Below are positions 8,299 to 41,322 of a DNA stretch of 64,000 bases, piece after piece. Every line of letters begins with the position of its first letter. Positions within the stretch are counted from its first letter, which is position 1. Source of the stretch: Calcarisporiella thermophila CBS 279.70 (lineage: Eukaryota; Fungi; Calcarisporiellomycota); assembly GCF_041956535.1 (NCBI RefSeq), contig NW_027192204.1, forward strand, positions 133,069 to 197,068, read 5' to 3'. Both the position numbers and the translations under genes were made by a program. Under the pieces are notes generated by a model. The model made no database searches. It was not told the DNA's origin and worked only from the letters and a program-made list of their open reading frames with translations.

Positions 8299-8886
8299 TT
8301 ATCGTTTTGCAGCCACTTGTGAATTAGCAAGCTTGGCCTTACTATCAGCAGCGCCAGGTGCATCGGAGTTCTCTTCTCTTTTATTTTTCTGCGCAGCCAT
8401 GCGTGGTCGAATTCTCACCCATATGCAACTTGCGAATCCGGTTGCGTTCTGAACCCGAATCAAACAACTCCCACCGGGACCACTACACTGAACGTTAGGT
8501 GTAATAAGGCTCATTCTGTAGAACCCTCTTGCTCCGAGCCCTATAATTCCAGGGACTCCAGTTTGGATCCGCACTGGGTTCTGAGTAAAATATTGGCCTG
8601 TTCCCGTTGGGTCGACATAAGCTTGCATAGGGCCAGCTCCGTCTACGTTGGCGACCCGCCAGACGACATTCAAACCCTCGCCGACCATATAAATAGGGGG
8701 ATTTTGAGGATATGGAATTTTAACGCCCATGCCGCACGGTTGTCTAGTTGTGTATCGCCTGCAGTCCACCGTGCTCACGTAGTCTTTAATCTGAAAACCA
8801 ACCGGACTCGTGAGCTTTCCATGGCCTAGTGCCAGGCCAACGCTGGCAGCAAATAAGACGAGTTTAGAGAACGTGGTAAGGAGCAT
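8299..8886 (-). CDS. Secreted Egh16/GAS1-like (DUF3129, LPMO-like) protein
   Basis: Signal peptide followed by HGKLTSP; NVDGAGP..VDPTGTG; C-SG..G-CLIRVQN..F..C pattern. Confidence 0.7.
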   Translation of the reverse strand: MLLTTFSKLVLFAASVGLALGHGKLTSPVGFQIKDYVSTVDCRRYTTRQPCGMGVKIPYPQNPPIYMVGEGLNVVWRVANVDGAGPMQAYVDPTGTGQYFTQNPVRIQTGVPGIIGLGARGFYRMSLITPNVQCSGPGGSCLIRVQNATGFASCIWVRIRPRMAAQKNKREENSDAPGAADSKAKLANSQVAAKR

Positions 8887-9486
8887 TATTAGACTGATTT
8901 GATATAGAATAAAAATCAAGGAATAAAATTCAATTATGAGAACCCGCTATACTTGAGTGAGAAAAAGATGAAATATTGCCATCGGGGTCCGCACCCTTAG
9001 ATGAGACCATATTAGTGTGTGTAGTTACTGGCGATCCATCCCAAATTGACAACCTATTTAGTCATATTAGCATCAAAATTTGGGATTGGACATGGGTATA
9101 TCTCGTATAAAAAACTATAACGAGTATTTGTCTACTACCTGGGCGCAAGCTTTTTACTAACTTTAGGCCAACACGAGAAAAAAAAGTCAAAGTCTAGGTG
9201 TATTTAGGCGACTGGCTAACATAGATGTCAAGTCTACTATCGAACGATGGTTTAAGTTATTCGAATTGTACTTCCGTCACATCTCTTTGAAATTTAATTT
9301 GACAACTAGCTTTATTATTTGGAAGAGGAAATAAATCTCTTTAGAAGAATTGAATAAAAAAAATGCTATAAATACATTACAAGCTAATGGTTTTCCCTCA
9401 ATAGACTTTTAGAATAAAAACAGGTCAACATTTTCCATAATGTTAAAAAGTATATCTGCTTCTACATTGAAAAAAGGGGTCATCAA

Positions 9487-17247: not shown

Positions 17248-17912
17248 ATGAAACTTTTCAACATTGCCACCGTCATTTGCTCCTTTGCAGAAATCGCACA
17301 GGCGCTGACCACATACGGACTTATGCCGCGGAAAGGTGCTGACGATTCTTATGCCATTGCAAGTATCAAACAAAGTGAGTTAACTTTACGCAACTATATC
17401 CCTCTTGAGGTCCAAATGCAAAATTGATCATTGACTCTTTTATTCTGTTTTATCTTACAATCGCAGATGGTATCATCGCGACCTTTGGATTTAAACAGGA
17501 ACCGGGGGATCAGATGAGAGTACGTGTCATTGTCGAGCAAGGGCTCAATGAGACAATCCATCCCTATCACGTACATTTGTATCCAGTCCCTCCTAATAAC
17601 GACTGCTACAGGACTGGCAGACATCTCGATCCCATGCGTGTCCGAGGATCTGATCGCTGCAATAGTAAGAATGGGTATCAGTGCGAAGTGGGTGACTTGA
17701 GTGGGAAGCATGGGCCGCTCAAGGGTTCAGAGGAGAACTTCCAACTTATCGATATCCAATACGACGACGCGGATCTTACATTTACGGGTAACAACTCTAT
17801 CGTTGAACGAAGTGTTGTGATACACCGCTACGACAACTCTAGACTTGCCTGTGCTAATATTACCGTAGTGGATGAAAGCGTCTTTAACAGTTACCTGCCT
17901 TCGGAAAATTGA
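17248..17912 (+). CDS. Secreted Cu-only (Sod5-like) superoxide dismutase; C-terminus possibly frameshifted
   Basis: Signal peptide and one intron (~17374-17466). YHVH, TGRHLDP, CEVGDLSGKHG and SVVIH..RLACANI are present; the Zn-ligand His residues and electrostatic loop are absent. Confidence 0.85.
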
Positions 17913-39240: not shown

Positions 39241-41007
39241 TCAGCAGTCAGACGTCCGTTTGTGATGGTGTTTTCCCTTGCAGTGCCCGCCATGTTTTCC
39301 GTGGTAGTTGCGGTTTTCAACGATATAAGTATCGGAGTTGATATTAGTGTTTAGAAGGCCGAAGTCGTTTGCCACATCAACATTCCCTACAGAATCGTCG
39401 ATATATTGACGTTTGGCGGAATGATGGTGGTGATGGTGGCCATGTGAATTATAGTTTCGGTTTTGCACATCAGTCGTGTCCGAGTTGATGTTTGTGTTCA
39501 GAATTGAAAACTCATTGGCGACGTCGACATTGCTCACAGAATCATCAATGAAGCCACGCTTATCTTTCCAATGAACAATACTGTTGTCATAATCACCATG
39601 AGCATGAGTGTTGGCATTGCGGTTCTCAGAAATACTGACATCTGAATTTTGAGTGGAATCAAATAGAGATATATGGCTAAGAATGTCGGCATTGTTGAGA
39701 GAACCGTCAAGAAGACCGCGTTTGTGATGTCCGTGTGATTTACTGTTCATATTGCGATTGTGCACTTTGGTCGAGTCGGAGTTGATGTTTGAGTTCAGGA
39801 TTGAGAACTCATTCGCTACGTCCACGTTACTGATAGAATCGTCAACAAAACCACGTTTGTCTGTCGCACGATGATGGTGATGGTGGTGCCCATGCTTAGT
39901 GTTGAAGTTGCGGTTTTGCACATCAGTTGTGTCCGAATTAATATTAGTATTCAGCAAGGATAGCTCGTTGGCAACGTCGACATTGCTAACCGAATCATCA
40001 ATAAAGCCGCGCTTATCTCTCCAATGGATTATGGTGTTATCGTAATCACCACGGGCGCGAGTATTAGCGTTGCGATTTTCAAACGACTCTATTTCAGAGT
40101 TAAAGTTGGTGTTAAAGAAAGAAAGGTGGTCGAAAATGTCAGCATTATTGCCTGAGTTGCTGAACCACCCACGCTTGTTGGCCGCTGAGTGATGGTGATG
40201 ATGGCCGTGAGATTTGCCGTTGATGTTTCGATTCTCCACATTTGTCGTATCCGAATTGATATTCGTATTCAAAGCCGATATTTCGTTAGCAATATCGACA
40301 TTGCTAACCGAATCATCGATAAAGCCTCGTTTGGTGGCCGCTAAGTGATGGTGGTGCCCGTGCGGTTTAGAGTTGAAGTTGCGGTTTCGTACATCGGTGG
40401 TGTCCGAATTAATGTTTGTATTTAGAACATCGATATCGTTGAGAACGTCGACATTGTCAATAGAGTCGTCATAATACCCCCGTTTGTTGGCTGCAGAGTG
40501 ATGGTGATGTCCATGGGATTTAGAGTTAGAGTTGCGGTTTCGAACCTCCGTAGTGTCTGAATTGATGTTCGTGTCTAGGACATCGATATCGTTGAGAACG
40601 TCGACATTGTCGATAGAACCATCGTAATACCCTCTCTTGTTGGCTGCAGAGTGATGATGATGCCCGTGCGATTTAGAGTTGTAGTTTCGATTTCGCACGT
40701 CGGTTGTGTCCGAGTTGATGTTCGTGTTTAGAACATCAATATCGTTGAGGACGTCGACATTGTCAATAGAGTCGTCATAATATCCCCGTTTATTGGCTGG
40801 CGAATGATGGTGATGTCCGTGTGATTTGTAGTTGCGGTTTCGAATGTCAGTTGTGTCAGAATTTATGTTTGTATCCAAGACGTCGATATCATTGAGAACA
40901 TCGACATTGTCGATAGAATCATCGTAATAGCCTCGCTTGGAGGGTGCCGCCTGCGCTATACTGGCCAGAGCAATAACTACTGATAGAGAGATTATGTATG
41001 GCTTCAT
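39241..41007 (-). CDS. Secreted Kex2-processed repeat protein: 11 ~50-aa Asn/Asp-rich peptides, 9 His-tailed
   Basis: Intronless 588 aa; signal peptide MKPYIISLSVVIALASIAQA; 12 KR sites delimit 11 homologous units. Confidence 0.9.
   Translation of the reverse strand: MKPYIISLSVVIALASIAQAAPSKRGYYDDSIDNVDVLNDIDVLDTNINSDTTDIRNRNYKSHGHHHHSPANKRGYYDDSIDNVDVLNDIDVLNTNINSDTTDVRNRNYNSKSHGHHHHSAANKRGYYDGSIDNVDVLNDIDVLDTNINSDTTEVRNRNSNSKSHGHHHHSAANKRGYYDDSIDNVDVLNDIDVLNTNINSDTTDVRNRNFNSKPHGHHHHLAATKRGFIDDSVSNVDIANEISALNTNINSDTTNVENRNINGKSHGHHHHHSAANKRGWFSNSGNNADIFDHLSFFNTNFNSEIESFENRNANTRARGDYDNTIIHWRDKRGFIDDSVSNVDVANELSLLNTNINSDTTDVQNRNFNTKHGHHHHHHRATDKRGFVDDSISNVDVANEFSILNSNINSDSTKVHNRNMNSKSHGHHKRGLLDGSLNNADILSHISLFDSTQNSDVSISENRNANTHAHGDYDNSIVHWKDKRGFIDDSVSNVDVANEFSILNTNINSDTTDVQNRNYNSHGHHHHHHSAKRQYIDDSVGNVDVANDFGLLNTNINSDTYIVENRNYHGKHGGHCKGKHHHKRTSDC
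39256..40932 (-). repeat. Coding tandem repeat, 11 units of 135-162 bp
   Basis: Unit consensus GxxDDSxxNVDxxNxxxxLNTNINSDTTxVxNRN..HGHHHH..KR. Confidence 0.95.
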
Positions 41008-41115
41008 TTTTAAAATTGTCTCAAGTGATAAAAAAATTTGAAAAAATGCTTTAATGGATCAGGTGTATATATATTGAAATCTTATAACCATGGGTCTGGA
41101 AAATGGCAAGGGGAT

Positions 41116-41322
41116 TTCTAGGGACAGTTATTTTGCGAAAAAAACAAATAATTCCGGGGAGTACCCACCTTGCGATAAACAAACAAGTTGTTTCCTGGGA
41201 GGATCTTCCTTGCAAACACAGTTTCAATTTTCCAGGGAGGATTCCCAATGTTAAAAAAACAAATATATTTTCCCTTGGATGTTTGTCAGTCTTGTCATAT
41301 TTGGTGATCGTGTTCCTCGGGG
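41116..41322. promoter_or_regulatory. Degenerate ~36-43 bp periodic motif array upstream of the repeat-protein gene
   Basis: TTCYnGGGR at 41116, 41152, 41192 and 41230, with weaker copies at 41270 and 41313. The units share TTGC and AAACA elements. Confidence 0.5.

Follow-up and report, generated by a model that had tools for sequence, protein, structure and literature searches.

A predicted Kex2-type polyprotein of Calcarisporiella thermophila carries His-tailed members of a seemingly undescribed peptide family found in bacteria, fungi and plants

Is a fungal protein divided by KR sites into eleven similar units a precursor of secreted peptides and, if so, what might the peptides do? The question is raised by an intron-free ORF of the soil fungus Calcarisporiella thermophila at positions 39241..41007 (minus strand, as for all features of the gene given below) of the window, by which we mean the whole 64,000-nucleotide stretch analyzed. 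The ORF encodes a predicted 588-aa prepro-polyprotein, and a public protein collection contains an identical entry. The initial annotation described a signal peptide, APSKR, eleven units of 45-54 aa each ending in KR, and a terminal TSDC. Splitting the protein at KR gives this layout: a 25-residue leader ending in APSKR (40933..41007), in which a signal peptide (approximately residues 1-20, with an AQA cleavage site) can be recognized by eye from its n/h/c pattern; units that are, from 1 to 11, 49, 51, 51, 51, 52, 54, 52, 45, 54, 49 and 51 aa long; and TSDC. The Kex2 site scan that the annotation had proposed finds 12 KR sites and no other dibasic pair, as against 1.3 KR expected from shuffled sequences (maximum 6 in 5000). 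Cutting by kexin after each KR, followed by Kex1-type trimming, would very probably yield eleven peptides of 43-52 aa and 4.7-6.1 kDa, ten of them starting with Gly.

The units are of three subtypes, in the order A1 four times, A2-B-A2, A2-B-A2, A2. Units 1-4 (40327..40932) are A1, with a GYYD start, an acidic character and a four-His tail. The A2 units are unit 5 (40171..40326), with a five-His tail; units 7 and 8 (39718..40008), with a six-His tail and a short HGHH tail, respectively; and units 10 and 11 (39256..39555). Units 6 (40009..40170) and 9 (39556..39717) are B, which the family profile and tree place as canonical members of the family described below; unit 6 retains the canonical C-terminal strand, and unit 9, nearest the family consensus, is 63% identical to bacterial peptides. 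Neither B unit has a His tract, and the other nine units have the His-rich tails noted in the initial annotation, the longest His run per tail being 2 to 6. The NRN triplet, which had been called invariant, does occupy core positions 32-34 in all 11 units, but the family-wide pattern is N-x-N-x-N and the Arg position is variable.

To judge by their codons, the repeats are old and maintained by purifying selection on the protein, because silent sites are near saturation while non-synonymous sites have hardly moved. The A1 cores have 91-100% protein identity, yet among units 1-4 synonymous sites are 53-98% diverged and non-synonymous sites 0-4% (pooled pN/pS 0.04); the pooled ratio for A2 units is 0.16. 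The only two Cys residues are Cys576 in unit 11 and Cys588 in the terminal TSDC (39241..39255, stop codon included), with the last KR between them. In 15 of 17 cases in the family (copies that are not independent), a Cys after Gly41 is followed by another in a short spacer farther downstream, and on this pattern, seen in the paralogs, Cys588 is probably the disulfide partner of Cys576. The 90 Asn residues include no N-glycosylation sequon, as against 14 expected; selection against N-glycosylation was dropped as evidence, fungal and bacterial units showing no overall difference (p 0.55).

Is the unit peculiar to this gene? A family profile was built on the 46-residue unit core and searched against genome contigs and protein collections. 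In the C. thermophila genome it detects about 20 genes, spread over ten contigs and with about 90 units in all, the counts being lower bounds because of gaps in the repeats. The two best homologs of the 588-aa protein are C. thermophila proteins identical to ORFs of the same assembly. Every paralog has a predicted signal peptide (again a pattern judged by eye) and units that start directly after KR or RR. One paralog (L024:3-2439) also has a second, truncated repeat type with long His/Asp/Trp tails, apparently an independent invention of the His tail. Contamination was rejected as an explanation: the 588-aa ORF has as neighbors fungal housekeeping genes with introns (for RNase P Pop3, NAC alpha and glucosidase II), the paralogs are spread over ten contigs, and the Orbilia and Papaver members have introns. 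The window also encodes an Egh16-like secreted protein (8302-8946) and a Cu/Zn-SOD-like protein (17409-17909).

Outside C. thermophila the family consists of small single-unit proteins. The core profile matched 56 proteins among 1.84 billion representatives, and 105 in a second search. Actinobacterial members occur in Streptomyces, Kitasatospora, Kribbella, Catenulispora, Phytomonospora and Actinokineospora, and three members with double-Gly leaders lie in cyanobacteria-like contexts, the taxon being judged from gene neighbors. Other fungal members are from Orbilia oligospora, Dactylella cylindrospora and Crucibulum laeve (a partial unit), and plant members from Papaver nudicaule and Stipagrostis hirtigluma. 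The Orbilia, Papaver and grass copies are taken to be host genes since the first two have introns and the Stipagrostis gene lies within an 8-Mb plant contig. The family is present in 7 of 401 Streptomyces genomes (approximately 2%) and absent from 400 other genomes sampled from the same class. Sequence searches of Pfam, NCBIfam and PDB gave no match to the 46-residue family, and a literature search with its motif strings found nothing relevant. A match to an already characterized family, which would have told against the initial annotation, was accordingly not obtained; the HMM search led instead to an unnamed family that is, by these searches, undescribed and cross-kingdom.

The bacterial genes always stand alone, without conserved modifying, immunity, receptor or two-component genes in their neighborhoods, which suggests that the peptide acts without partners. 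A signal peptide is missing from some actinobacterial members; one such leaderless member (L096:5616-6165) begins 4 bases after an ArsR/SmtB metalloregulator gene and is divergent from a FecCD-type ABC importer. In another case (L094:8001-8477) the family member is fused to an unnamed C-terminal domain of 80-100 aa and lies between two tandem DUF2397-2399/SbcC-like operons. An actinobacterial-looking precursor on a Logan contig (P0027) has two KR-joined units and may be a bacterial mini-polyprotein.

The strongest argument about processing comes from what precedes the unit in different hosts. Gly is the first residue in 117 of 127 units. Directly before the unit, 97 cases have an AxA signal-peptidase site; in 6 more the unit follows a lone Met, in 3 a double Gly, in another 3 a dibasic site and in 2 RxxL. 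The plant copies combine a plant signal peptide with the RxxL site, and a double-Gly member (P0020) is flanked by an NHLP-type HlyD and a C39-peptidase ABC exporter, the context of an exported peptide with a double-glycine leader. Five processing signatures before the same Gly argue for use of the KR sites and for the unit as the functional molecule. The proposal of a secreted Kex2-type polyprotein holds up, and we infer that the 588-aa precursor is secreted and cleaved. The genome has six kexin P-domain matches (on contigs C5, C7 [two inverted pairs], C17 and C19), an expanded set in keeping with the abundance of KR-repeat precursors in C. thermophila.

How did bacteria, fungi and plants come to share the peptide? 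In one paralog, identity of the units to a peptide of Streptomyces sp. NBC_00775 reaches 90% over 51 residues, and about half to two thirds of the codons for identical residues differ between the fungus and Streptomyces genes compared. High identity with divergent codons speaks for strong constraint and against a very recent transfer. In trees from 46-51 columns most branches lack resolution. A rapid AU test, on few columns of uneven composition, rejects monophyly of the fungal units (p 0.0001) and of the two plant units (p 0.02). Parsimony would favor a bacterial origin with repeated transfer.

The near-invariant positions of the family are Asp4, Ser25, Asn32, Asn34, Asn36 and Gly41, followed by Gly1, Asn8, Asn9 and Asn24. 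Residues 7-23 have a six-residue hydrophobic repeat pattern and residues 25-47 a strict alternation; a 12-residue internal periodicity seen by eye failed to reach significance across 38 lags and was discarded. The hydrophobic moment has its maximum at 110-130 degrees, not 100. AlphaFold modeled a five-unit paralog as parallel beta strands in a repeating stack (pLDDT 38) and, from a deeper alignment, a three-unit paralog as a helix at residues 10-23 with coil in the remainder (pLDDT 44). Foldseek searches with these models returned only weak beta-helix rows.

Among the known systems closest to the precursor are fungal KEPs, defined as having at least three repeats of 8-100 aa between dibasic sites (PMC7329392). 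With KEPs (PMC7329392, PMC6339444) it shares a predicted signal peptide and KR-separated repeats within that size range, of which it has 11; it differs in that its repeat has single-copy bacterial and plant homologs, and the family motifs do not occur in those parts of the supplements to the two surveys that were available. The gene is best described, from its sequence, as a known kind of precursor with KEP layout that carries an undescribed peptide in a derived, His-tailed subtype. Dikaritin (ustiloxin-type) precursors likewise have a signal peptide and KR-flanked repeats. The initial annotation argued against a dikaritin RiPP and we concur: the cores are 43-52 aa, the bacterial homologs are without modifying enzymes, no UstYa/DUF3328 match was found in the genome (nor by the control search), and no tyrosinase match was found in the window, the nearest lying about 515 kb away on the contig.

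The best functional model is Rep1 of Ustilago maydis, a prepro-protein cut by KEX2 into 11 products, ten of them 34-53 aa, that form a wall amyloid (PMC3133707). The two proteins have in common the KEX2-site layout, the number of products, and amphipathic, predicted secreted peptides; Rep1 lacks His tails, and amyloid formation is established for Rep1 and hypothetical for the present family. No Ustilago protein is among the HMMER matches in the 1.84 billion representatives or in the 90% collection. Rep1 is not known to have a bacterial counterpart.

Could the bacterial members belong with known surface amyloids? An Atlas language-model search, which gives leads only, placed rodlin (0.80) and chaplin (0.78) as the nearest named clusters; the same search with units 1-4 gave no usable match. 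Rodlins (PF25848) and chaplins (PF03777) resemble the family in being small Sec-secreted actinobacterial proteins with a similar Asn/Gly/Ser/aliphatic make-up (the core has 19% Asn, close to rodlin), and an 11-residue rodlin-like motif in the family beats 60 of 60 shuffles. Homology was nevertheless not supported. For rodlins the hhalign probability is 2.3-2.6% over 11 columns, no family member has PF25848 and there is no conserved Cys pair; for chaplins it is 0.1% and no PF03777 domain is present. Moreover, family genes are not clustered with chp/rdl genes, and chaplins are in all four genomes checked whereas the family is in about 2% of Streptomyces. Bacterial functional amyloids are typified by conserved Asn and by hydrophobic residues at regular intervals, and the curlin repeat has two N-x-h-x-h-x-Q motifs joined by x-G-x-x (PMC12822426). 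Like curli CsgA and Pseudomonas FapC, the family combines, in its C-terminal half, conserved Asn with small residues in alternation and an x-G-x-x-N turn; unlike them, it has no secretion or nucleator operon and one module per chain after cleavage. It is not a curlin repeat, since the turn and Asn match but the first Gln is Ala and the second is off register. Ice nucleation also found no support, the host being thermophilic and no Fusarium or Mortierella being among the named matches.

The His tails are the feature that sets this gene apart. Runs of at least three His follow 17 of 60 C. thermophila units versus 1 of 130 others, and His tracts arose in several paralogs. The A units form a long, fully supported tree branch; their starts are more acidic and more aromatic, and their His tract replaces everything past Gly41. 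By this comparison the His tail is a fungal addition that replaces the family's last strand, which makes metal binding unlikely as the ancestral function. The poly-His metal display originally proposed consequently survives in part: the tails are real but derived in this fungus, and are not the purpose of a family whose bacterial single units are tail-less. The calculated net charge of A units goes from -2 to -6 at pH 7.2 to -2 to +3 at pH 5.5, whereas B units remain negative. Upstream of the ATG there are a TATA-like element at about 60 bases (41066..41074) and an array of four TCCCnRGAA motifs at 36-40 bp spacing (41116..41238), resembling STAT/CSL-type sites. The array is absent from the upstream regions of the paralogs and unique to the His-tailed gene; the paired motif has five matches in the 28-Mb genome, three of them in this promoter. 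TTGTTT-type motifs are interleaved with the array.

What, then, might the freed peptides do? We favor, tentatively and at somewhat below an even chance, a self-assembling, Asn-ladder, beta-rich surface or matrix polymer that works like Ustilago Rep1 and has a pH- or metal-responsive fringe; the beta-rich coat of the initial annotation stands as the best single reading, with the two AlphaFold runs, both below pLDDT 45, divided between one all-beta and one partly helical model. The unit would be an unmodified, conserved 46-residue module, probably of bacterial origin, with a hydrophobic and acidic first half in a six-residue pattern and then an Asn-alternating strand ending in a Gly turn. Most likely, freed modules assemble by stacking into a cross-beta polymer that Asn ladders stabilize, and the polymer would serve as a coat of wall, spore or matrix in the manner of the Rep1 repellents. 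His tracts on nine units would fringe the polymer with Zn/Cu/Ni ligands, and the A units, with a charge of about -4 at pH 7, would come close to zero at pH 5.5-6, a change that could plausibly act as a switch for assembly late in the secretory pathway or in acid medium. The two canonical B units may nucleate or co-assemble.

The coat is favored by purifying selection with near-saturated silent sites, the five processing signatures at one Gly, the exporter context of the double-Gly member, the stand-alone bacterial genes, the conserved Asn, the C-terminal alternation, the rodlin-like composition and short motif, the rodlin and chaplin leads, the tandem beta-stack model (of low confidence), the Rep1 precedent, and members with an extra domain behind the module, as fits a display or polymerizing unit. 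AbaA/Tec1-type sites also count for it. The binding site is CATTCY (PMC3769392), and such sites are enriched upstream of one subfamily, the paralogs whose units end in GPGDNS or GPGNNS (14 versus 3.1 in shuffles, a post hoc comparison), as ACATTCY clusters (L022, L023, L026, L027, L028, L030, L031, L033). The genome has one TEA gene, and the sites hint at developmental expression of that subfamily. Against the coat stand the absence of AbaA-type sites upstream of the His-tailed gene, the pLDDT of 38 and 44, the helix and coil from the deeper alignment, the lack of rodlin or chaplin homology, and the missing curlin Gln pair. Signal-less actinobacterial members suit a coat less well, and a core spore-coat protein would not be expected to be limited to about 2% of Streptomyces, as the family is. 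Three class I hydrophobin (PF01185) matches above cut-off also occur in the C. thermophila genome (C25:89122-89352, C18:373349-373579 and C18:374809-375051; best E 3.7e-21). Hydrophobins are regarded as largely confined to Dikarya, and C. thermophila belongs to Mucoromycota. With these matches a substitute coat is not needed, which weakens the idea of a coat instead of hydrophobins.

Some of the same evidence can be read otherwise. Soluble metal-binding peptides for scavenging, storage or detoxification, a possible but rather unlikely alternative, would bind metal through the free N-terminal amine, Asp4 and Asp/His at 11, 14 and 15, with His tails multiplying capacity. Free Gly1 and Asp4 are indeed the most conserved features, several paralogs gained His tracts, the His-tailed gene has its own four-site promoter array, and one leaderless member sits behind ArsR/SmtB, opposite the importer; but that context is one lineage among about 20 contexts, 129 of the 130 non-Calcarisporiella units lack a His tract, and conservation of 46 residues at up to 90% across kingdoms is more than a chelator would require. 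An antagonist acting on competitor membranes or walls, bacteriocin-like or anti-grazer and diversified in the fungus into a cocktail as with Ece1, is unlikely. It would account for the patchy, accessory distribution (7 of 401 versus 0 of 400), repeated capture by eukaryotes, the double-Gly leader with a bacteriocin exporter, the leaderless forms, and the Gly-hydrophobic start and predicted helix at 10-23, yet the peptides are anionic and Asn-rich, their hydrophobic moment does not peak at 100 degrees, and no conserved immunity gene lies beside the bacterial copies.

A role as a diffusible signal or inter-kingdom effector, perceived by a receptor as with pheromone-type KEPs, is improbable: the exact N-terminus, strong conservation and plant copies with their own signal peptide and RxxL site would fit, whereas the length is great for a pheromone, no receptor or two-component genes adjoin bacterial copies, and about 90 divergent copies occur in one genome. 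Least probable of all is a mostly uncut precursor acting as a repeat (beta-solenoid) wall protein. The regular period of 49-54 residues, the stacking of units in the tandem AlphaFold model and the Cys pairs that bridge KR sites are set against units that every time start exactly after KR, homologs that occur as single units and are released by other proteases, and the six kexin P-domain matches.

Returning to the self-assembling polymer, a broader scenario is possible, though clearly more doubtful than the coat itself: the module would have moved repeatedly among actinobacteria, cyanobacteria, fungi and plants, each host's protease freeing the same Gly, and Calcarisporiella would have made of it a combinatorial polyprotein library, in which a His-fringed, pH- and metal-switchable amyloid coat evolved in this gene. 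Few fungal KEPs have an assigned function or origin. In the present case a KEP repeat leads back to a bacterial peptide that stands on its own, and this opens the family to direct tests. Cross-kingdom conservation of up to 90% and an exactly kept N-terminus point to a strong, partner-independent activity. If that activity is amyloid formation, the family would add a functional amyloid that crosses kingdoms and has, in the His-tailed form, a natural variant for metal display.
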